64,000 nt of DNA from Monocercomonoides exilis PA203 (taxonomy: Eukaryota > Protista > Preaxostyla). Under the pieces are notes generated by a model. It ran no database searches. It worked only from the letters and a program-made list of their open reading frames with translations, and was not told the origin of the DNA. The DNA is taken from positions 868,001-932,000 of the forward strand of contig LSRY02000020.1 in the NCBI GenBank assembly GCA_001643675.2, given 5' to 3'. Every line of letters starts with the position of its first letter. The stretch's first letter is position 1. The translations under genes were made by a program, and so were the position numbers. Of this stretch, positions 3,001 through 19,454 are shown one piece after another.

Positions 3001-5096
3001 CCTATCAGCTCGATGGCATCCACTGCGGGGCGATTACTCCGATGCTTCTGCAGGAAGGTTATACTGTTCTGACTGCTGATGCTATAGCTCATTTGGGTGC
3101 AGACGCGAAAATGCCGTATGAGATACTCAACATGTACTCGATGGACGGTCGCATTTTGGAGGCTGCAAAGTATGTGTGCAAAGACGGGAATGAAGACTTT
3201 ATATTCATTTATCTCTCTTCCTTTGGGTGTGGGGTGACTCCCTCTTGCCACGAGCAGTGCTGCTCCTGGTTGAAATTTAAGGGAAGAATGTATGCGAACA
3301 TCAAAATCGATCAGGCACTCAACATGGGAGCAGTGCGTGTTCGTATTCGGTCTCTTGTTGCTGCCCATCGCATGCAACGCTATCGGCACACACTTCCCTT
3401 GGTTGCTCCTTCATCTTCTCCAGCTGCCTCTTCCCCTCCAGCTGCAGACACACCATCATCTTCATCAACACCTTCAAGTTCACCTTCGCCTTCGCAGTCA
3501 GCAGGTGCGACACCTGTTTCATTCAAAAAGGAACTGGTTGAGGTTGTTGTGAAGCAAGGACTGAAATCGATTCCCAAGAAGCCATATACAGTGCTTGTTT
3601 CAAACTTTTCTGAAGAGCACACGGATGGATATTGTGCAGGGCTCAACAGCGAAGGATGGAACTTTGTTGTGTGTCCTGATTTCAAGCAGCAGGAGACTGT
3701 TGACATGGGGCTGCGGTACGTGAACAACGACTGCTGCTATGGAGCTATCCTGATTGTTGGAGGTATAATCTTAGCGCTGAAAAAGGGGCTGTATGATCCA
3801 GATAAGACCCACGTGGCGTGGATTCATATGGGCGGCTCGTGCAGTTCGAGGAGCTTGGCGTTTACCATCCGCCGTGGGCTTATTCAGGCTGGCTATCCAC
3901 AAGTTGGAGTGTCTGAGTTCAACTACAATTTCTTGTGCAATCCTGAACTGAGCATATCGCAGACATTGAGAGTTAACTATGCGTTTGTGATGAATGATTT
4001 GCTGACTCGCCTGTATCACAGGTGCCATCCGTACGAAAAGGAAAAGGGATCTTCGATGAAGCTTTGGAAGGAATGGAAAGAGAAAACGCTCAAGCACGTT
4101 GAAAAGGGATCGATTTTGAAGACCAAGTCGTTCATGAAGAAGATGGTGAAAGCATTTGAGAAGCTGCCACTGGTGACAGAAGAGAGAACGAAGCCGCGTG
4201 TGGGTATCATCGGAACTATGTGCAAAGTGGAGCCAGAGTTCTACTATTGGCTGCTCGACTATCTTGTCGATGAAGAAGGCTGCGAAGTGTCTGTGCTGGA
4301 CTTCTATGGCTATGCTATTGCTCCGTCGTACAACGCAATGAATGCATACAACACATACTCATTCCCGTTCATGATGAAAGTTGGGGGATTCTTTGCAAAC
4401 AAGATGATTGCGACTTTTATCGACTGGGGAAGTGCTGCATTGAAAGGGTCAAAAAGATTTGATCCGATGATGCCGATGAGCACGGTGCTTGAGCGCACGT
4501 GGTCGATTGTGCCCAAATACCACATTTCCGGGGAAGGGTGGTTCTACACCTCGCAGTTTGTGTTTCTCCTTGACCAAGGCGTGGACAACTTCATCTGCAC
4601 CACGCCGTTTGACTGCATGCCTGTGCATCTCGGCTGCCGGGGTGCGATGAAGCAGCTGAAGGAGATGTTCCCGAAGCTGAATGCGTGCATTCTTGATTTC
4701 GATGCTGGGACCTCGCGAATGAACCTGACGAACAGGATTCGGCTGATGCTGAACTCGATGCCTGAGAGGCAGCTGTCTGGTCCCAAGAAGACTTTGTGCT
4801 CGCTGGTTGACTTGGAAGATCTTGTTGCTCGTGATGCATCACAAACATCTGTTGATTCATCATCAGAATCTGCATCAGCATCTTCTTCTTCTTCTTCTTC
4901 ACAAGATGAATTTGCTGGAAAGATGCCAATGGCAATGGAATGCAAGCCGTCTGCTTGCCGCTCTTGCGCCTCGTCTGCTACGTGCTCTATTTTGAGCTCT
5001 GCTTTGTTGCAAAGCAGCACCTCAAGTACGCCTTCGTCTATTCCTTCTGCTGCCCCGCAAGATCAACCAGTCGCACAGGCAACAACACCTTCATAG
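3..5096 (+). CDS. Fused CoA-substrate-specific enzyme activase / 2-hydroxyacyl-CoA dehydratase-like Fe-S protein (two BadF/BadG/BcrA/BcrD ATPase domains + DUF2229/HGD-D-like region); 5' end lies upstream of the window
   Basis: Frame is open from the window start. ASKHA activase motifs LELGGEDAK, MCAAGTGAF, IASRCGVF (domain 1) and GIDCGSTT, LDIGGQDMK, ACSSGCGSF, LGSRCTVF, VVQGGTF (domain 2). Then CGQCVNNC...GNKC, ACYPAK, SFGCG, DCCYG, PFDCMP. No intron in 5.1 kb. Confidence 0.9.
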   Translation: MCLTGSAGMQVSEALSIPFVQEVVSCTLAVRKLLPPVDVILELGGEDAKIVYFTEIDGQKTVTSKSLSSETASSSSSTKEETKPCSSACSSSSNESSSCSCSDCSSPKDRNVAIDSRMNTMCAAGTGAFIDQMAALLETDAEGLNNLAKTYTHLYTIASRCGVFAKSDVQPLLNEGVPKSDVAASVLQSVVNQTISGLASGKPIKGRVAFLGGPLHFLSELRNMFIKTLALVDESEINTILSEKREPEGEEGKKFIRYGTGLLPENAQFYVARGAALYSASQTPFPTAFLQGRIEKMSDKLRAASYKQLLPPLFESAEALNAFRERHSHSVVPRFSMENARGPLFLGIDCGSTTIKGCLTNLKGEVGWMYYTTHQGNPLKAAIDMFTSMWTSILEEPKPTEEEKAAGKGENGFEKPFIARAVATGYGENLIKAAFLVDDGMVETMCHLKAAQFFQPDVDFVLDIGGQDMKSMTIDVDVSEKSPSPSPSPSASASASASSQSSSSSSSSSNDSVEKRRRSGGVISTICLNEACSSGCGSFIQTLSATLEMPITEFSAAGLRSKQPVDLGSRCTVFMNSRIKQAQKDCATVEDISAGLALSIIKNALFKVIRIHDPKELGTKVVVQGGTFLNDSVLRAAEIVFDTTVVRPDIAGHMGAFGAALVAQEQWEKLNAEVASAVADTTTKQDEGEVDRDETPMDDEDTAEMTKELKKGLSQTSFLSLQDIKELKWESTSRRCGQCVNNCQLTVHRFSHHDGAEHISGNKCERGLPPDQRRIDQTLPDLVAWHRQRVFSPKLYTPLLPKDAPRGTLGIPRALFMWEDYPMWFTVFTKLGFRVIISRESNEKMHLKAMETIPSEAACYPAKLMHGHVADLIERKVDAIFFPMHLYGRKEVKDAPEHFYCALLSTYAAMINNSFDFKKLGIKYFMPPVLIYEEDKGAKRFGEEVHKMWPEIKKSEGRDAFAAGCKAFKEWREEYRRKGEEAIQLSRSKGKPLAVLAAYPYQLDGIHCGAITPMLLQEGYTVLTADAIAHLGADAKMPYEILNMYSMDGRILEAAKYVCKDGNEDFIFIYLSSFGCGVTPSCHEQCCSWLKFKGRMYANIKIDQALNMGAVRVRIRSLVAAHRMQRYRHTLPLVAPSSSPAASSPPAADTPSSSSTPSSSPSPSQSAGATPVSFKKELVEVVVKQGLKSIPKKPYTVLVSNFSEEHTDGYCAGLNSEGWNFVVCPDFKQQETVDMGLRYVNNDCCYGAILIVGGIILALKKGLYDPDKTHVAWIHMGGSCSSRSLAFTIRRGLIQAGYPQVGVSEFNYNFLCNPELSISQTLRVNYAFVMNDLLTRLYHRCHPYEKEKGSSMKLWKEWKEKTLKHVEKGSILKTKSFMKKMVKAFEKLPLVTEERTKPRVGIIGTMCKVEPEFYYWLLDYLVDEEGCEVSVLDFYGYAIAPSYNAMNAYNTYSFPFMMKVGGFFANKMIATFIDWGSAALKGSKRFDPMMPMSTVLERTWSIVPKYHISGEGWFYTSQFVFLLDQGVDNFICTTPFDCMPVHLGCRGAMKQLKEMFPKLNACILDFDAGTSRMNLTNRIRLMLNSMPERQLSGPKKTLCSLVDLEDLVARDASQTSVDSSSESASASSSSSSSQDEFAGKMPMAMECKPSACRSCASSATCSILSSALLQSSTSSTPSSIPSAAPQDQPVAQATTPS

Positions 5097-6088
5097 AAGA
5101 ATTACAATGTTTGTTTTTTGAGAGTTTTTTTTATAAAAGAATAAAAGAATATTTCATTGGATTATCCATTTTAATGCATTAACGTTATGATTTTGTTAAT
5201 CTCGTTGATTAGTTTTATAAATAACAATGATATTTTTCTTGTTATATAATTGTTTGAAGTATAAGTATATTCATATTTTCCGAAAAAGTTTTGATAATTT
5301 GTTGCTTCTTTATTACAAATCTATGATGCTGTTTCTTTTTTTTAGAATGTTTCCTTTTTGACTCTGTTCCAAGAGGATATCTGGCAAACAGATGTATTTT
5401 GATTCTTCTGAACGAGTATTTGATTAGAAGCTCGGTAAACTCTGATGCTTCAGTCAATACTCATCGGCTTAACTGTTCGGTCGAATCTACTTCTTCTTTT
5501 AATCAGATGTTCTTTGTCACTCGCTTTCAGTCATATTAGCATTATATTTAATTGATTATTTGAATTCTTTTTGTCTTTTCTTTTCTTTTTTAATGACAAT
5601 TGTATTTTTCATCACTAAATGAAGTAGTTACAAAGTATTAATAGCAATACGAACAATTGAAACTCACATGAACTATCAATTCACACTTTCTTTAAAAAAG
5701 AATATGTATTAGCAGATAATTTGTTTCTGTCTAATCTGTTTTTTATTTTTGTCTTCTAATTGAAATTGGATTTAAAAACTTTTCAAGTCAATTTTGAAAA
5801 AAATGGAGCATTGATGCTATTCTCCTTTTTTGTTGTTTATTTCAAACTGCCTTTCGTCTGATATGCAGTTTTCATGTATTTCGAAGTCTTTTTGACGAAT
5901 TTTTCAACTTTGAACTGAATCAAAAAATGAATCCAAATGAAAAATAAAAAGAAAAAATAGAAAGATAGAAAGAAATTTTCAATAAAAGCAATTCAAATAG
6001 ATATTGTAACAAAAATGATAACTCGGAAGTACACTCATCAATGAAAAGAAAGATTTAATTTGAACGTTTCATTTTTTATTTTTGAAAT

Positions 6089-7589
6089 TTAAAAGCAAAT
6101 CAAATAGTCACAAAGATTTCTAGAAAAGCGAACATTACAATACTTAAAGATCTTTTGGTTAGTGATGATTAATATTATGTCTTCATAGCCTTTTTCCTCA
6201 GTCAGCTCATAAATTTCTCTCTTCATCTTCTTTATTGTTGCTTTATCCTTCTCTGAACTCGTCTTTATACACATGTTTTTTGTTAGCAATGAAAAGAATT
6301 GCAGTCCGTATGCAACTATTTCAATCTCCAATTTCGCTTGAAGCATTTTTTCAGAAAAGAAATCAAAGACTCTTAACTTCAATGAATGATTTTCTCTAAA
6401 TGTTGCTTCATTTATTATTTTCTCAATAATTGCACTGCAATGATCCTTTATTCTTCTGTGATATTTCTTTGATGCTTTATTCAGTTTCGCAACACATGCA
6501 AGCAACTGAACCAATTCTTCTTCTTTCCATAATCCACAAAGTTGAAAACGTGTGTCAATCATTTTCAGCCATCTTCGAATAATGAGTGCTTCTTTCTTTT
6601 GCGCTAATTTTTCTTTGTCTTTCTTCCAATCAACAGTTCTTTCCAGTTCGCCTATTTCTAGCAATGTCTCTTTCGCAAATTGCAACTCAGTCATATATAT
6701 TTTTTGAACATCCAAGAAGTATATCCTGTCAAAGAAAAACTCCCAAGCGCATTGATACGCAAGATGTGTAAGGTTGCGGGCTTGCTGATGATATTTAATT
6801 ATTTCTGTTATTTCTGTTAAATAAAATTCTTTTTCAACAAACTTGCATTTATAAATATAAATGACAAGAGAAAAGCCAAATTGTATAAAAAATTAATAAA
6901 AATTTCAATTGCTTGAGATAAAAAGGCAATGTTCACACGCTAAACATTTTTGTCCTTGTCAAAGCTAATAGCGACTTTTCAACCTCTTTTTTCTCTTTCT
7001 CGCTTTCGCCTTTGTTTAAAGCAGCTTTTAGAAGGTGACATATGCAAAAATATAATACTCCATCCCCTGCATAGTAACATGAAGAATTTAATAGAAAACA
7101 TTCACAATAACAAATCAATGTTTCTTCGTTATTTTTATTTTTGATACTTTCTTCGTAGATTATAATCTTCATATAATCATTAATCAACTTTGACGAAAAA
7201 GGAAACAGTGGTTCTTTTTTGTCAACAATTGTCTTCCAATAACCAATGTTACAAATCAATGGATTCACCATCTCCAATGATAATTGTTCTTTTCCAATCA
7301 TTTGCGCTACTATGTCGAATAGTTTGCTTTTCACAATTGATTCAAGTTCGTCATCATTCAAACTATTTATCATAGCATTCATTTCTTCGATTTTCTGTTT
7401 TTTCTCAGCATATGTGGAATGAGCCAAATTCGAAAATGTTTCTAAATAAAGTATATAATGTATTTCTTTCAAAAAACGAAAACTTCAATTGTTCGAACCT
7501 CTAAACTGATTCAAGCTTTCTAATAATATCAATTGTTCATTTGGTGTGGGGCTGTTATCTTTTTTCTTTTCAGAAAATGATTGCCCCAT
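6089..7589 (-). CDS. Hypothetical helical protein of a lineage-expanded family (~448 aa, 3 exons)
   Basis: Exons 7589-7499, 7441-6939 and 6841-6089 join in frame through GT-AG introns (7498-7442, 6938-6842), linking track ORFs 6933..7472 and 6089..6715. Motifs EKKQKIEEMN and EIIKYHQQARNLTHLAYQCAW resemble, from recall, a highly expanded Monocercomonoides family. Starts MGQSFS. Confidence 0.8.
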
Positions 7590-8857
7590 ACGTTACAAAG
7601 CAATTATGCCAAATGGTTCAATGCTTAAAAAGCTAAAAAAAACTATTAAAATTTTTTGTAAAAAAGTGGGATAACGTATATGATTATGGTATTTTTCTTT
7701 TTGATTTCGAATATTATAATAAAAATAATACATTTACATTTGTTAAATAATACATTTCAATTTTTAAAATTTTTTCATCATTGATCCAAACGGAGATATT
7801 ACAACAATGTGTTCAAGAAACACTCGATTTAAATATAGATGTTTTTTGTTAAACATCAATCAGAACGAATTGTTCACATCGATTTTCAAAACTTCTTTTT
7901 TCCATTGTTTTTATTGTTATTGATTGGAATCTTAATTATTGGAAATGATTTCGAAAAAATGTTTATTTTGAAATGAAGAAAATTTTCTGTAAAGACGGTT
8001 TTCTCATCAACGAAACAAAAAAGAATTTCAATAATTTTTTGAATAATTTGTCATCTCATAACAAACTCACTTGATATAAAACGCTTTCTTTCACATGATT
8101 TGAGTATTTTAAAAAACACTTATGGATGTATCTTTGAAAAAGGATTTCGAGTTTCTACGAGATATCAATTAATTAATTTAAAATAATAATAAATCGAATG
8201 ATATGAAAACGAAAATGTTTTATGACTGGTGAGTTAACGATGATTGGATATATTACATGAAACTATGTTAATTGTTCTTTTTGTCGTTGTTGAGAAAACT
8301 GTTTTGTTGTGTATTTTTAACACAATCTTCAATAACATAACAAAAACTTCAATCATTTGAATGAAAAATAGTAAACAACAAATAAATGACAATATTCGTA
8401 TGATCAAAGAGTTATTCTTTATTAACATTCTTTATTCAAAAACACATGGCATTTCTGAAGTTAGAACCAATTTGTTTGATTTAAATACTTTCATAAAAAT
8501 AAAACTATCTTATTTGCGTTTCATCAAATAATTTATTTGAGTTATAAGAGGCTTTATTGTTTTTGATTTTCAATCCTTTTTTTTCATTAAAAAAGATTGT
8601 TCAAAATAAATATTGCATAAACTCGTAAAGACTGCATCTAACGTAATAAGTGCCAATCTCACTAATTAAGATTAAAACATTCAAAGGTTAAAAAAAATAA
8701 CTGTTCATCCAAAACATAACAAACTTTACATAAATGGTAAGAATTTTAAAAAATAAAGATTCTGTCAATTCATTCTCTTATAATACAAACAATTTCACAA
8801 AAATTTTATAAACGATAAAAATAAAAATAAAAATAAAATTTAAAAACAACTCCATTT

Positions 8858-11948: not shown

Positions 11949-13823
11949 ATGAGCTTAACGCCAGCATCCATGATTGTCCGTTTGTCCAAAAAGCCTGAAA
12001 ATCTTGTATGTGCAGATTGCGGATCGAATTGTATGTGCCATTTTGTTATTTGATAGAATATCTTTTTCTATGATTTTTATCAATTATAGTAACGAAATGG
12101 GCTGTTCTTCCACATGGAATCTTTATTTGCATAAAGTATGAAAAGTCCTTTTGTTAATGTTCACATGAATAATAACTAACTGTTTACAGTTGTGCAGGAT
12201 GCCATAGACGTCTGGGAACTCAATACAGTTTTGTTAAGTCAATTGATCTTGATACATGGGGAATGGAACAAGTGAAAAAGATGGCAATTGGTAATACTTT
12301 ATCTAATGCCTATTATGAAGCAAACATTACATCAACGTTTCGTCGACCAAAGCCATCAGATGAGCAAATGTATTTCATTAACAATTCTTATTTTGACAAA
12401 TTTTTTATGAATTTTTTTACTATTAGAACAAGAGAGAAATTTGTAAGGGATAAATACGTAAGAAAACTTTGGGCTGATAAGGCTTGTTTAATTATTAATT
12501 TTTTATTGAAAGAATAATTCTTTTTTCTTTGTGCACATTGTAATGTATATTCAGTCACACCCACCTCCAGTTGCATCTCAAGAAATGCTAGATGAATCGT
12601 TAAAGCAAACCACAGCATCCAAGGAACCACAACATCCAATTCGACCTTCTCAAACTGTTAAAGCAATCACACTTGCAAACTCGTCATCGATTTCAGAGGC
12701 ACGCGCTCCTCGTGCTACTCTGAATCCAACATTTTCGTCTCTTCTTATGTTTACAGATACTTCGCCTGAAGAAGCTCAGCAGATTAATTCCAGGGCTACT
12801 CAATTGCCTGAAAGTGCTTCTGAGCCAACACTTCCCACTGCTACAGAAGCAAGTTCTGCGCCAATAGCAACGAACACTGCTCAAATGCAGCCTCTTCCAT
12901 CGACTCTTCCAATGTCATCAGCAGTAGCAAGCTCACCTTCACCTCCTCAGGCTGTGCCACAGCCGTCTTTGCAAAGCCAGTTCTTTTTTGGTGCTCCTCC
13001 TCAGGTTCAGACAACTGCTCAGGCACCATCTGGTGAAATGCTGTTCAATACTCACCCTCCTCCTCCCCCTTCTCAGATATCGTTGCCTCCTCCTGCTGGC
13101 ATACCGGAACAAAAGGTCCTCGCTCCAGAACCAGATCTTCTTTTGCTTGACACCAACCAAGCAGCAGTGTCTGGCTCATCTTCTCTGAATATCGCAGCTG
13201 AAATGATTTCGCAATTCCAAAGTGTTCCACCTCCTGGGGTACTGTCTGCTCCAATCCCTGGTCTGAAAGAATTTTCATATTCGGAAAATTTAGGTCGCAC
13301 AACAGTAACCAAAGGGAATCTTACAGTGGCGCACTATCACAGGGTCATTGTGCGGTTCAACATTGGCGGTTCATTGTTCTCGACATTCATGTCAACATTG
13401 GAGAGAGCACCGCCAACATCTCTGCTGTTCCGCCTGACAGATCACATCAAGAGCAAGGGCACTGTTGTTACACGGAGAACGGTATATGTGGATGGCATGA
13501 ACACATTGCTGGGGGTTCGGCAGTCGGAGACTGTTACAGTGCCACATTTTCCTCCGTTTGTTGCAATTTCTGGTGATTTATCAGAGTCTGAAGGAGTGTT
13601 TGGTTCATTTGAAGAAGCCATATCATCTTCAGAAAGCTCTGCGATTTTTACGTCAACTTTTTTCCTTGATAGGGATCCTATTGTGTTCAGATATATTCTG
13701 AACCATCTTCGAAGCACGTCACAAGCTAACTCTGTCTCTCTTGGAAATGTGGGAGTTGTTGCATGCTCGGCCGACAATATCAGATCAGAGTGCGATTATT
13801 ACGGCCTGGCTCGAATTGTGTAA
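11949..13823 (+). CDS. ArfGAP zinc-finger protein with C-terminal KCTD/T1-type BTB domain (5 exons)
   Basis: Exons 11949-12030, 12090-12135, 12190-12369, 12427-12481 and 12555-13823 give CADC-x16-CINCAGCHR (ArfGAP CX2CX16CX2CX4R), VKSIDLDTW and REKFVRDKYVRKLW. The C-terminus has VRFNIGGSLFST...FFLDRDPIVFRYILNHLR...ECDYYGL. Confidence 0.88.
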
Positions 13824-14049: not shown

Positions 14050-14657
14050 TTAATTTTGTTGATCTTTGCATACTCTCGCAAACACATCTTCTGGAAGAGC
14101 AAAGACTGATTGTTTTGTGTGACGAAGTGAAAAAGATTGGAACCCAATAGGATCATCCGGTGGATGCGCCTTGAACAAATGGAAAAAAAATTCATTTTTA
14201 ACAGAATTTTTTGCAAGTATTAAATAAAAAAATTATTAAGATTTTTTCATACAGGATTTTCGTACTTCTTAAACATAATCCACAAAAAGAAAAAGAGGCA
14301 AGTTTGTGTGGCCGTTCCAACTATATTAAGTATTTTCATGATTGTAGGTATGAAAATCAAATCATGAAATCTCCATTCACCCGCATAGCTCTGAAGTGTC
14401 AGGAGCATATGAGTCGACGAAAGTGCAATATCAAATCCAAGATGCACCAAAATTACAAGTTTTACAAGTAAATTAGGAATGCTCTGTATTTGAAATGCAA
14501 TGCAGGAAGCCAAAATGCATGAAAAGAAATAAATATCAAATAATTCCGCAGAGCGCTGATGAAATGAAAGTATGAGTCCAGCAATACGCATAGTTAATTC
14601 TATAAACAGAAATGTTATCGACATGAAGGAAACATCTGGATTTATCGATTGTTTCAT
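14050..14657 (-). CDS. Small putative multi-pass membrane protein (~174 aa, 2 exons)
   Basis: Hydrophobic ORF 14657-14253 with about 4 TM-like segments, GTATGA...AAG intron 14252-14170, and in-frame exon 14169-14050 ending TAA. No recognised homology. Confidence 0.5.
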
Positions 14658-15003
14658 AAAATAGAACTGATTTTTTAACTAATTTTCTTATGGGCAAATT
14701 TATTTTATTTTTTTTAACAATTCTTCCAATTCAATTTCTTATTTATCAGATTGAATTGTTATAAGTCAAAATGTTTCGTTGAAGAATTATTGCACTCATT
14801 TTCTTTAAAAGTTGTTGAGGATGATCTATTAATTTCATCAGAAAAAATAATAGCCAATGAAAAAAATTTTTTCAATATTTTATCATTTTATCGTCATGCA
14901 GCAAAAATAATTCACCATCGAAGAACTTTAATACAAAATCAAAATAGAAGTTTGTAAATTCGAAATTTTTATTTTAGTAATTATAAAGGAAATCATTAAA
15001 ATG

Positions 15004-15305
15004 CACCATTTATTATTCAAAATTGGTTTACATTTTATTCAAAATTAATAAAAATTGTATATTTTTCAAAAATAATTTTTTTGTGATAAATTGGGTTTTT
15101 GTTGAGTATCGGAAAGCGATGAAAATGTTATATTCAGTCAATATTCGAAATACAGATGAGAAATTGAACCTCTAAATTTGTTATTTGAGAATAAAAATTT
15201 GAATTTCTGATTTTTCAGAAAAAAAATTATCTTCATGGAAATCGGAAATTTTGTATATATATTCACCTCACATGTTGGATTACATATTGTTTTATCCAAA
15301 TATAT
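15004..15305 (+). repeat. Left arm of 302-bp inverted repeat
   Basis: Base-by-base reverse-complement match to 15962-16263. Confidence 0.97.
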
Positions 15306-15562
15306 GGGTGATTATTATTGAAATCATATATTTTCGATCAAATAATTCGGATTGATATTTATATTTTGAATTTAAGTTTATGAACACAGAAAAGTGACAA
15401 CTCCTTTAAAAACCATCACTGTCTTTCTTCATCACTATATTTTGGCATTTGAAACTATTGAAATAATTTTTTCATTTCACTGACAAATTCCTTTTCTCTG
15501 ACAATGAATTTTCATTATAATCATCACCCCGAAAAAAAGTATGATTTCAAAAATAATCACCC
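15306..15562. mobile_element. Nested MITE (257 bp) with 23-bp TIRs and 6-bp ATATAT target-site duplication
   Basis: TIRs GGGTGATTATTATTGAAATCATA (15306-15328) and TATGATTTCAAAAATAATCACCC (15540-15562) match 22/23. ATATAT flanks both sides (15300-15305, 15563-15568). Removing the element restores similarity to the opposite arm. Confidence 0.8.
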
Positions 15563-15961
15563 ATATATAATTCACATCAAAACAAGATGAAGAAAACCAA
15601 AAATTTTTTCTATTTAAAAATCTATTTATGCGCTTTCAGAATTTTTCATTTGTTTTTTGTTGATCTTTTGAACATATATTAATGTGGGACAAAATATTTG
15701 ACTTCAGGCATTTTCTTTGAAAAATTATGAACCTTTGATGAACTTTTTGTGATTAAAAAATTTGAAAAAAATGGGTTTATTTTTAGAAATACGTGTGAGG
15801 TCGCAAAACATAATGTTATAACATCAATGAAGTTTGTTTACAGTCACAATAATATTATTTATTTTAAAATCTGATAAAGTTTTATAATGTTATTAGTGAA
15901 ACAGTTTTTTCATGCTTTGTGCATAAAAAGCTTGAAAGTCGTTATTTCCCCCATGTGAATA

Positions 15962-16263
15962 ATATATTTGGATAAAACAATATGTAATCCAACATGTGAG
16001 GTGAATATATATACAAAATTTCCGATTTCCATGAAGATAATTTTTTTTCTGAAAAATCAGAAATTCAAATTTTTATTCTCAAATAACAAATTTAGAGGTT
16101 CAATTTCTCATCTGTATTTCGAATATTGACTGAATATAACATTTTCATCGCTTTCCGATACTCAACAAAAACCCAATTTATCACAAAAAAATTATTTTTG
16201 AAAAATATACAATTTTTATTAATTTTGAATAAAATGTAAACCAATTTTGAATAATAAATGGTG
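15962..16263 (-). repeat. Right arm of 302-bp inverted repeat
   Basis: Base-by-base reverse-complement match to 15004-15305. Confidence 0.97.
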
Positions 16264-16596
16264 TAAAATTGTGAAGGAATTGAAAAAGAAATCGTTATCA
16301 CTGGATTTTTTTAATTGGTCGCAACATTCCAATTTACCACTAATTCAATATATCTTTTCTAAATTGTTGAATTATAAAATTTAACAGAAGATATAGAAAA
16401 TAAAAAATATTTTTTGTTTTGAAAAAAAATAATAAGTTGAGAAAAGAATGGAATAATATTGAAAATAAAATTCAATAATTTTCGAAAGTTTTCAAAATAA
16501 CAAAATATATGTGGAAAAAGAATTTTTGTTCATTTACAACCATAATAAGATATTTATTACGAAAATCTTTTATTTGCTTATTTAAAACGCAAATAG

Positions 16597-19454
16597 ATGC
16601 AAAATGATGAATTTAATGATGGAGAAACATTCTCATTTCCATCAGAAAGCATATTTGAAGATGATGACGAAAATACTGAAAAAGAAATGAGCTCTTCAGA
16701 TGATAATAAAATAATTGAAACAGTGTCCACTGCAACTGTTGCACTTGTTGAGCCCGAATGGTATTTTAAAACTCCGCTAGAAGCTATTCATTTGTCGAAT
16801 AATGAGTTGGAAATGGCAAAGGCTTCATCCAATTTTTGCAAAGGTTTGATTTTTTGAAAAGAAAATTTCCTGAAAAGTTATGGAACTTTATATCATTTTA
16901 GAAAAATTCATTGAAAGTCTTGAAAACGTAACTCGGAAGGAGCACGTAGAGGCTCTTCATAAAGAGGTATTTTCATAAAACTATCAATCACATATTTAAT
17001 TCAAGGATTAAAAATTTAGGAATGTGACTTAATTGCAAGATGTCATAACAGACTTGGCCAACCAGAAAGTTCATTAAAATATCTTATTAAAAATGTTAGT
17101 TTTCCTGATTTTTGATAACTTCATTTTTATTTTTTGAAAAGGTTCAAACAAGAACTATTGATTTTAACAGTTTTAAGGAATTGGGGAAAGCATATGGCAA
17201 TCTGGGTGAGATTGAATTGGCCATTGAAGCATACACACAAGGACTTAGTTTGAATCGCGGAGATCCTGTGATGTGGAGGCAGATTGGAATAGAAATGATG
17301 AGATCAACAGAAGAACACGTAAAAGCTTTGAATATTACGCTTTTAGCATTGAACCAAAAATTTGATGCTAAGCACTGCACAGAAAGCATCGATGAAGAAA
17401 AAGAGAAAAATGCTGAGTGCGAGGGAGAGATTATGACAAATGAAATGGATAAAATATTTAATGAGATATTATTAATGATGATAATGGTGTGGATTACAAC
17501 TGCACAAGCGGAGATTTTTAAACGGGAATCACACATTCAGGTATGATTTAATTTTTTATTATGAACTTTTAATTAAAAAAAAAATCTTGTTTTACAAAAA
17601 TTGATTTTCTATTCTGATCAATGAATTGTCTAATTCTATTATCAGAGGGAAAGGATGTTTCGAATGAGCAAATTTCGAACAATCGGAATGAGTCCCAAGC
17701 ACAGGTCTTCGGCGTATTCAATGGTGACGCCAACGGACCCAGGTATATCTCAAACAGAAGCACCTTCCTGCTCTGCAAGCACAACCGCTCCAGCTTCTCA
17801 GTCTTCGTCTGCACAAACAACTGCCAACACGTCCACAAAGCTAAATCCACCTAAAAAGCTGAAGTTTCCAGCGCCAGACACATTTCAACAGCGGTGCAGA
17901 GAAAAGGACTTGGAATTTATTTTGTCTATTGAAAAATTTGTGATCACAAGATATTTTCCTCTTCTGTCATCCATTGGGAATATGATGAGCTGCAGAAAGA
18001 GTCAAGTTTCAAATTGTCCAGATAATACAAAGGAAAAGCAGCAAACTACAGATAATACAACTTCAAAGACAACTGCCAATGAAAAAAATGCTGTCGAATC
18101 GGATTCGCTGATGTCATCAACAAAAAGCACAGAAAAGACGATTTCCAGCGAAGCCAAATCTCAACTTTTAGACACGATTTCACAGAAGCTGTTCAAATGG
18201 CTGGACAAAAAGATTGATGGAGAAAATGAAGACAGCTCTGAGGAAAAAGAGGAAAAAGAGAGAAAAGATGAGGAAGCAGGAAACGAGGCACAACAGAATA
18301 AACAGCAAGAGAAAGAGCAAGAGACAAAACAAGAAGGAAATGAAGCAGATGAAAAGAAGATCACAAATGAGTCAATTGAGAAAGAAGGCAAAGCAGCTGG
18401 TGATTTGGAGAACAACGCTTCAATGAGCTTGGAGGAAAAACGGGAGAAGCGAAGATTGAAGCGAAAGGAGAAGCAAAAAAAGAAGAAGGAAAGAAAAATG
18501 AAAGAGGAAGAGGAAATGAAGGCAAAGAAGGAGAAACTGAAGAACAAATCATCAAATGAAAAAGAACAAAAAGAGGAAAAATGCAAAGGAAGAATTCACA
18601 TGGCGGATGTGTTTGCTGAAATGGAGCTTTTGGAGAGAGAAAGGAGAGAGGAAGAGGAAATCGACAGGCTTGCCCATCTTTCACAATACAAACCTTTGTG
18701 TCAGCAGACCTCTGCTTCTCAATCGAAAATATCTTCATCATCATCTTCATCATCTTCTTCCTCAAATATTCCTTCATCTCATTTTGCACTTCCGCCTTCA
18801 TTGACTGCCTTCCCCCGCCTGTTCCCAGTGATTGCTATTCCTGAATTGCATTCATCTGCTTCATCTTATGTGAAAGAGCTCTTTATGCAGACACCCGACG
18901 TCTTTCTGCCTTCTCCTCCTGATGAATTGACATCTGCAGATTCTTATCACACAGACAGTTGTGATTCATCTGAAAGGACATTATCAGAACAAAGCTCATC
19001 ATCATCATCATCATCATCATCTTCTTCTTCTTCTTCTGACACACAAAATGCAGTCAAATCACATCCACTCCACAATTCCACTCCAGTTGAGCTTTTCTCT
19101 CTTTTTGTGTCAGCCTGGATCGCCATCCATCGCCGCCACTTCCACGTGTCGTATCTCATCCGCCCGCCGCTTTCGAAGTATCAGTTTTCTTTTCTTCATG
19201 TTCCGTTTCACTCAAACACTTCTGATAGCAGTTCTCGTGCTGAAAAGGAGACTGAGGCTGAAGGCAGCGCAAATAAGGGGGAAGAAATGAAAATCACAAA
19301 TAACGAATTTGAGGAAGAGGATGAACAAAACAACGAAGAAGAAGAAGAAGAAGAAGATGATGATGACAATGATGATATGTTTAATCTTCTCAACGATGGA
19401 TCAGATGAGATAAAAATGTCACCTGATTTTCCTGGAATTCCACTTCACCATTAA
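16597..19454 (+). CDS. TPR-repeat protein, probably C8orf76-like, with long low-complexity C-terminus (5 exons)
   Basis: First exon 16597-16843, two short exons, an exon ending 17540 and last exon 17646-19454 join in frame through GT-AG introns. TPR-like LIARCHNRLGQPESSLKYL and FKELGKAYGNLGEIELAIEAYTQGLSLNRGDPVMW; N-terminal SIFED...VEPEWY. Confidence 0.7.

Follow-up and report, generated by a model that had tools for sequence, protein, structure and literature searches.

Two putative genes of Monocercomonoides exilis are separated by a 1.26-kb segment whose first 302 nucleotides return at its far end as an exact inverted copy. We asked what this segment is and whether its perfect arms mean that it inserted recently. 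A preliminary description, made from the letters of the window (the whole 64,000-nucleotide stretch analysed, 868001-932000 of contig C15), had offered two readings: a young non-autonomous element of an unclassified family, or arms homogenised by gene conversion. In the M. exilis assembly, ~35% of the sequence is annotated as 'unclassified repeat', and foldback or MITE families have not been described (PMC8767320). The explanation that we favour as a whole, and that we hold to be probable, is that the segment belongs, as one copy, to a family of non-coding, foldback-type MITEs of this species that had not been described before.

Structure of the element

We resolved the segment into the following features (window coordinates, with strand for the arms and the units in them).

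15004-16263 (C15:883004-884263): whole foldback element, with CACC...GGTG ends
15002-15003: left copy of the target-site duplication, TA now TG (one substitution), from family comparison of flanks
15004-15305, plus strand: left arm (long terminal inverted repeat), opening with the family terminus CACCATTTATTATTC
15013-15056, plus strand: two tandem 22-bp subterminal units (15013-15034 and 15035-15056), family consensus TTATTATTCRAAATTGGTAAAC
15306-15562: nested MITE 1, 257 bp, flanked by ATATAT at 15300-15305 and 15563-15568
15569-15577, plus strand: left arm resuming past nested MITE 1, with 8 of 9 bases complementary to 15953-15961
15578-15681: true centre of the foldback element, ~104 bp, placed by homology to the centres of other copies
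15686-15952: nested MITE 2, 267 bp, flanked by ATGT at 15682-15685 and 15953-15956
15962-16263, minus strand: right arm, identical to the left arm when reverse-complemented
16264-16265: right copy of the target-site duplication, TA intact; C15:884246-884265 is among the TA-flanked termini

Repeat comparison within the window gave two arms of 302 nt each, complementary at 302/302 positions and 656 nt apart, in agreement with the earlier claim of fully identical arms around a 656-bp spacer. The CAC...GTG termini described at the outset were also recovered, and read CACC...GGTG. The two 22-nt subterminal units have a 12-nt core in common, TTATTCAAAATT, and are mirrored at 16211-16254; the 12-bp subterminal repeat at 22-bp spacing is thus real. 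The element had been said to have no coding capacity, and we observed none. No open reading frame (ORF) touching it in an ORF scan is longer than 69 aa, the short ORFs are mirror images between the two arms, and an Rfam search of the element returned nothing near threshold, only sub-threshold snoRNA noise.

Folded as single-stranded DNA, the element is predicted to form a stem that spans the whole of its arms (MFE -405.5 kcal/mol). The true centre is a degenerate, asymmetric palindrome, in which the innermost bins drop to 32/43, as in every other copy. The element lies mid-contig, and its flanks are unique and non-palindromic.

A dispersed family of foldback elements

We searched the 82.3-Mb assembly (101 contigs), in which only the best-scoring candidates were scored, and read 16 family copies in full. 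Of 270 first-look candidates for the arm, 44 were scored as matches; nearly all of these lie in facing inverted pairs, and the arm was 76-83% identical to the arms of other copies in this search. The family terminus (TA|CACCATTTATTATTC) occurred 172 times in the genome, compared to 0 times for a reversed-pattern control. This count allows at most 2 mismatches to CACCATTTATTATTCAAAWTTGG and comprises 87 matches in forward and 85 in reverse orientation, on most contigs and typically in facing pairs 0.4-1.05 kb apart. These terminus counts put the family at ~90-135 copies. The arm search proposed in the preliminary description as a check of copy number and shared termini therefore returned a multi-copy family with a conserved terminus, and the suggestion of a non-autonomous, multi-copy mobile element is borne out by the 44 arm matches and by the excess of termini over the control. 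A metagenome scan for the family terminus gave 0 matches.

The copies have a common anatomy, in which the terminus is followed by 22-bp units, a unique arm core and a short centre. Arms in the family measure 300-450 bp or more, and the imperfect centre measures ~100-150 bp. Without its two nested MITEs, the studied element is ~712 bp long and aligns end to end with copies of 720-780 bp such as C13a; its positions 590-680 match the centres of C58, C26, C27 and C41. The 22-bp units number 2-5 per copy (two here, 3-5 in the others), with extra outer units in C26, C27, C25 and C12a, and the arms are repetitive only in their outer part. These units are predicted to be transposase binding sites. In the copy at C80:1364784-1366618, the termini lie ~590 bp outside the arm cores, which suggests a large expansion of the 22-bp subterminal array, like that of classical Foldback elements.

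Target-site duplication and class

TA directly precedes 58 of the 87 exact 18-nt termini (67%), compared to ~10% expected from base composition; ~33% of exact termini have no TA flank. We compared the flanks at both ends of the copies, leaving out C34, C27, C42 and C49. The copies with clean ends (C13a, C12a, C12b, C26, C25 and C41) carry exactly TA on both sides and nothing longer, and no copy in this test had a flank duplication above 2 bp. The studied copy has TG on its left and TA on its right. The TAAAAT reported on both sides is present, but it is not a target-site duplication, since the family flanks show TA alone. The resemblance comes from an A/T-rich target, ...TAAAA[TA]AAAT..., together with one substitution in the left TA.

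These flanks bear on a different classification, in which the family would be a CACTA/Chapaev/Transib-like member or would come from an unclassified superfamily that duplicates 6-7 bp. It had been suggested by the CAC...GTG ends and by the TAAAAT at either side, offset by one base. We consider it exceedingly improbable. Essentially all copies have the terminus CACCATTT, which is not CACTA, so the ends are no evidence for the CACTA/Chapaev/Transib group, whose termini are of the CACTA/CACWR type and whose duplications are 2-5 bp long and not specific to TA. The duplication is specifically TA and in no copy longer, in place of the 6-7 bp considered earlier; two-thirds of the exact termini are preceded by TA, and the target and the substituted left TA account for TAAAAT.

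The family has the features of Tc1/mariner-type MITEs: a TA duplication, conserved terminal inverted repeats (TIRs), no coding sequence, a length of 0.4-1.05 kb and many dispersed copies. Because a TA duplication is the signature of the Tc1/mariner superfamily, we class the family as Tc1/mariner-style foldback MITEs. The transposase acting on it would be a Tc1/mariner-superfamily DDE enzyme.

Two nested MITEs in the spacer

A genome search with the 656-bp spacer resolved it into MITE 1, the true centre and MITE 2. It was the insertion of these two MITEs into the central zone that enlarged the spacer to 656 bp. MITE 1 ends in GGGTGATT...AATCACCC, with 35-nt inverted repeats. Its sibling at C46:614725-614986 is 98% identical in the genome search, which indicates that MITE 1 is a young insertion and that its family was recently active. 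The uninterrupted right arm gives the pre-insertion site of MITE 1. This built-in empty site suits a 6-bp ATATAT duplication better than TA. MITE 1 may be a derivative of the pogo-like family described below, with which it has identical first 8 bases, GGGTGATT.

MITE 2 has the ends GGGAC...CCCCC and belongs to a very abundant ~270-bp family, with 1665 first-look candidates in the genome. The best 40 copies among these candidates are only 83-88% identical to it, and a best relative at 88% makes MITE 2 an old copy. Eight aligned copies have conserved ends, GGGRC...CCCCC, and 4-bp direct flank repeats (ATGT, ATAT, AAAT), which suggests a superfamily with a 4-bp duplication.

Arm identity within and between copies

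We compared arms over a ~260-bp arm core in 16 two-armed copies. Arm identity within a copy was 0.94-1.00 in 15 of the 16, and 1.000 in nine. The best arm of any other copy reached 0.83-0.98, and copies differ from each other by 2-17%. Identity within the copy versus identity to the best other copy was 1.000 vs 0.827 for the studied element, 1.000 vs 0.84 for C41 and 1.000 vs 0.874 for C16. A maximum-likelihood tree built from 33 arms placed the arms of each of the 16 two-armed copies as sisters; stems were long (0.15 substitutions per site for the studied copy) and tips were near zero. Identity profiles of 13 other copies were 50/50 in nearly every 50-bp bin out to 300-450 bp and collapsed only in the central 100-150 bp. 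These profiles indicate that perfect 302-bp arms are normal for the family. C13b is a decayed copy with an arm-to-arm identity of 0.81, and its decay shows that homogenisation can lapse.

If copies had merely diverged from a palindromic master, the arms within a copy would be no more alike than the arms of copies of the same age. The observed pattern within and between copies thus requires homogenisation, either in situ or in every master lineage. MITE 2 provides a second measure. Because its best relative among the 1665 candidates is at most 88% identical, at least ~6% divergence has accumulated on its own branch. At this divergence ~36 differences would be expected between the 302-bp arms, and we observed 0. 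An estimate of 16% from private substitutions in MITE 2 was inflated by subfamily structure and was set aside for the bound of at least 6%. Across the family, a perfect TA has been lost at about a third of termini while the arms remain perfect.

The relationships among the arm sequences point to arm-to-arm homogenisation, and not to insertion youth, as the source of arm likeness. Of the two readings first offered, gene conversion is the one that the within-copy excess (1.000 vs 0.827) and the sister arms in 16/16 copies favour. The mechanism would be intramolecular gene conversion or hairpin mismatch correction.

A young insertion, in which recent transposition from a master with perfect arms explains the identity, would be in keeping with the 302/302 arms and with the presence of MITE 1, itself young by its 98% sibling. 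We consider it improbable, because the other copies that were scored are at most 83% identical, the old MITE 2 (best relative 88%) has been on the same molecule as the arms since its insertion, and the left TA has mutated to TG. Nearly all copies have identical arms, whatever their mutual divergence, and a long-lived master lineage with perfect arms would need homogenisation too. The word 'young' in the preliminary description therefore does not fit this element, given the 83% nearest copy, the old MITE 2 and the mutated TA.

In principle, the inverted duplication could owe its existence or its perfection to an ONT fold-back read or to short-read polishing. ONT reads underlie the assembly, which was polished with short reads (PMC8767320), and much larger near-perfect palindromes are centred on family copies at C41 and C42, such as fold-back reads could yield. 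For the studied element, however, we consider an assembly or polishing artefact very improbable: it sits mid-contig in unique, non-palindromic flanks, conserved termini and a TA flank place it in a family of ~90 or more copies, its asymmetric spacer holds two different nested MITEs, and arm mismatches persist in C58, C13a and C13b. These mismatches indicate that differences between arms are not generally lost in the pipeline; it is possible that short-read polishing smoothed near-identical arms to some extent.

Homogenisation of the arms has a practical consequence for long-TIR elements. Arm identity is unfit for dating their insertions, as the identical arms here, despite 17% divergence from every relative, illustrate.

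Proposed history of the element

From the observed family membership, termini, TA duplication, nested MITEs and family-wide arm identity, we propose the following history. The element would have been moved in trans by a DDE transposase of the Tc1/mariner superfamily, which would bind the subterminal repeats and cut between TA and CACC. Insertion would have taken place at a TA, which was duplicated. The copy is by now an old resident, and two unrelated MITEs entered its central zone later. The arms of each copy would be repeatedly corrected against each other, and such homogenisation would wipe mutations, probably insertions too, from the arms and leave the centre exempt. The three nested insertions that we read (MITE 1, MITE 2 and the pogo-like element in C16) all lie in the imperfect central zone. 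Their location may mean that insertions in arms are lost to conversion, or that centres are preferred targets.

Search for an autonomous partner

The preliminary description had called for a search for longer copies with a transposase or integrase ORF. One such copy exists: C16 is a 3.0-kb element whose 535-bp arms are 99% identical and which carries a DDE_1 ORF (E=4.9e-6). We rejected it as an autonomous copy, because at least 30 full-length relatives of its 2.03-kb core exist, and the five that we read have no foldback arms and have ends of their own. These relatives indicate that the core of C16 is a pogo-like element that inserted into the centre of a foldback copy (arms 507 + 497 bp), so the ORF is there but belongs to the nested element.

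The pogo-like family is ~2.03 kb long, with at least 30 full-length copies at 75-93% identity. It has a TA duplication, ends in which TA is followed by GGGTGRTTTTTTTATCCGGACA (GGGTGR... after the TA) and a duplicated ATCCGGACA motif; examples are C1:1240255-1242285 and L033 5694-7716. A DDE_1 frame of 403-405 aa is open in four of the five copies read, and the frame in the fifth is 331 aa. By its sequences, the family may still be active.

The genome holds 732 DDE_1 candidates. The terminus and subterminal motif of the foldback family were absent from the 30 DDE_1 loci and five pogo loci scanned. A DDE_3 match (Tc1-type, E=3.2e-21, 300-aa open frame) was found at C24:1044540-1044971, within a TA-flanked 5.1-kb pair of exact family termini (C24:1041518-1046651). 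This Tc1-type transposase is a candidate partner of the family and could equally be another nested element.

Flanking reading frames and possible local effects

The element triples a gap of ~0.68 kb between ORFs. The putative genes that start at 14657 (minus strand) and 16597 (plus strand) lie 347 and 334 bp from its ends; they had no Pfam match, and their exact sequences were absent from the protein collection. A 430-aa ORF at 12531-13823 (plus strand) ends in a BTB_2 domain of the potassium-channel tetramerisation type (E=5.5e-10), and the ORF at 17112-17546 (plus strand) matched TPR weakly, below threshold.

Inverted repeats that match perfectly over 302 bp and lie 656 bp apart can serve as substrates for inversion, the element is predicted to fold into a stem as long as its arms (MFE -405.5 kcal/mol), the genome has at least four Piwi-domain loci, and two ORFs start within 334-347 bp. 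The element could on these grounds be functional, as an invertible 656-bp switch or as a source of hairpin RNA or siRNA that regulates the flanking ORFs. We consider such a role unlikely. The would-be switch consists of two nested MITEs and a degenerate centre, lacks an ORF and gave no Rfam match, and the same structure occurs at ~90 or more unrelated sites, as a selfish element would show. Any inversion or siRNA output would be a by-product and not a designed function: recombination between the arms could flip the centre, and a read-through transcript could form a long hairpin. Nothing indicates a dedicated function at this locus.

Comparison with known systems

The outer ends of Tc7 are common to Tc1. 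Long-TIR and wholly foldback Tc1/mariner MITEs are treated as a recognised class in PMC3814204, with Tc7, Tc6, CeleTc1/Tc7, Cele1/2 and PALTA as members; for Tc7 of Caenorhabditis elegans, a reference is given in PMC6829131. Like Tc7, Tc6 and long-TIR Stowaway-type MITEs, the family is non-coding, measures <1 kb and has a TA duplication, consists almost entirely of long inverted arms around a short unique centre, and is presumed to be mobilised in trans by a Tc1/mariner-type transposase. Unlike Tc7 and Tc6, with which it has no sequence similarity, it resides in an oxymonad protist and carries 22-bp tandem subterminal units in variable number.

Drosophila FB makes 9-bp duplications. The family resembles the Foldback superfamily (FB, Tm1) in the tandem subrepeats and variable length of its arms, and differs from Foldback/Mutator elements, with their 8-9-bp duplications, in that its duplication is TA only. 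With Galileo (P superfamily) and Drosophila Foldback, it also has in common long, internally repetitive inverted arms of variable length and a link to rearrangements. For Galileo, TIR identities of 98-100% within a copy and 79-97% between copies are reported (PMC3573991); here too the two arms of one copy are near-identical and copies are far more different. In contrast to this family, Galileo makes 7-bp duplications (7-8 bp for P/Galileo elements in general) and encodes a THAP/P-type transposase in full-length copies. The duplication here is TA, and the family has no such transposase linked to it.

In human Y-chromosome palindromes and plastid inverted repeats, arm-to-arm gene conversion keeps arms perfect despite their age and leaves the spacer unconverted. 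The family likewise appears to show concerted evolution of inverted arms around an unconverted centre. Its arms are 0.3-0.45 kb long, compared to kilobases to megabases in those systems, and belong to dispersed mobile elements.

The 2019 M. exilis genome paper mentions neither RNAi nor transposons. Names can now be given to part of the unclassified repeat: this family, the two nested MITE families, a second foldback family and the apparently intact pogo-like family.

Palindromes centred on foldback elements

The second foldback family is ~990 bp long with arms of ~345 bp, and many inverted pairs of it occur genome-wide (for example, C7:958290-959282). One copy lies at 6880-7241 and 8291-8650 within C41:386000-395999. 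A copy of the studied family (C41:393241-394289) sits at the exact central TA of this second-family copy, with flanks that are palindromic up to the TA. We observed no empty site for this C41 insertion among the loci read.

The same C41 copy is the centre of a giant palindrome with arms at C41:386000-393240 and 394290-401557, which are ~99-100% identical. Both arms extend over at least 7.2 kb, and each contains a 642-aa ORF (3351-5279, minus strand, within C41:386000-395999). This palindrome may be a genuine inverted segmental duplication that a hairpin-forming element seeded, or else an assembly artefact of ONT fold-back reads, and concern over an artefact is more serious for the C41 and C42 palindromes than for the studied element.

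We tentatively suggest, as a conjecture that we would not yet rate as probable, that hairpin-forming foldback elements are not passive MITEs in this genome but organise palindromic DNA: their arms would be corrected, their centres would be preferred landing sites, and they may seed gene-bearing inverted duplications. Examples of landing sites, in this organising role, would be the two MITEs here, the 2-kb pogo-like element at C16 and the family copy in the C41 foldback. Should this hold, and should the structures not be ONT artefacts, transposons would be driving the formation of gene-bearing palindromes in a protist. The more valuable thread is the one that follows from the large palindromes, namely that such elements either seed large gene-bearing palindromes or mislead ONT assemblers.

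A further palindrome, within C42:121000-132534, has ~3.5 kb per arm and is centred on a copy of the studied family. Its outer part is made up of a 1.57-kb repeat in two inverted copies that are 91% identical, and this repeat is frequent on contigs 42 and 80.
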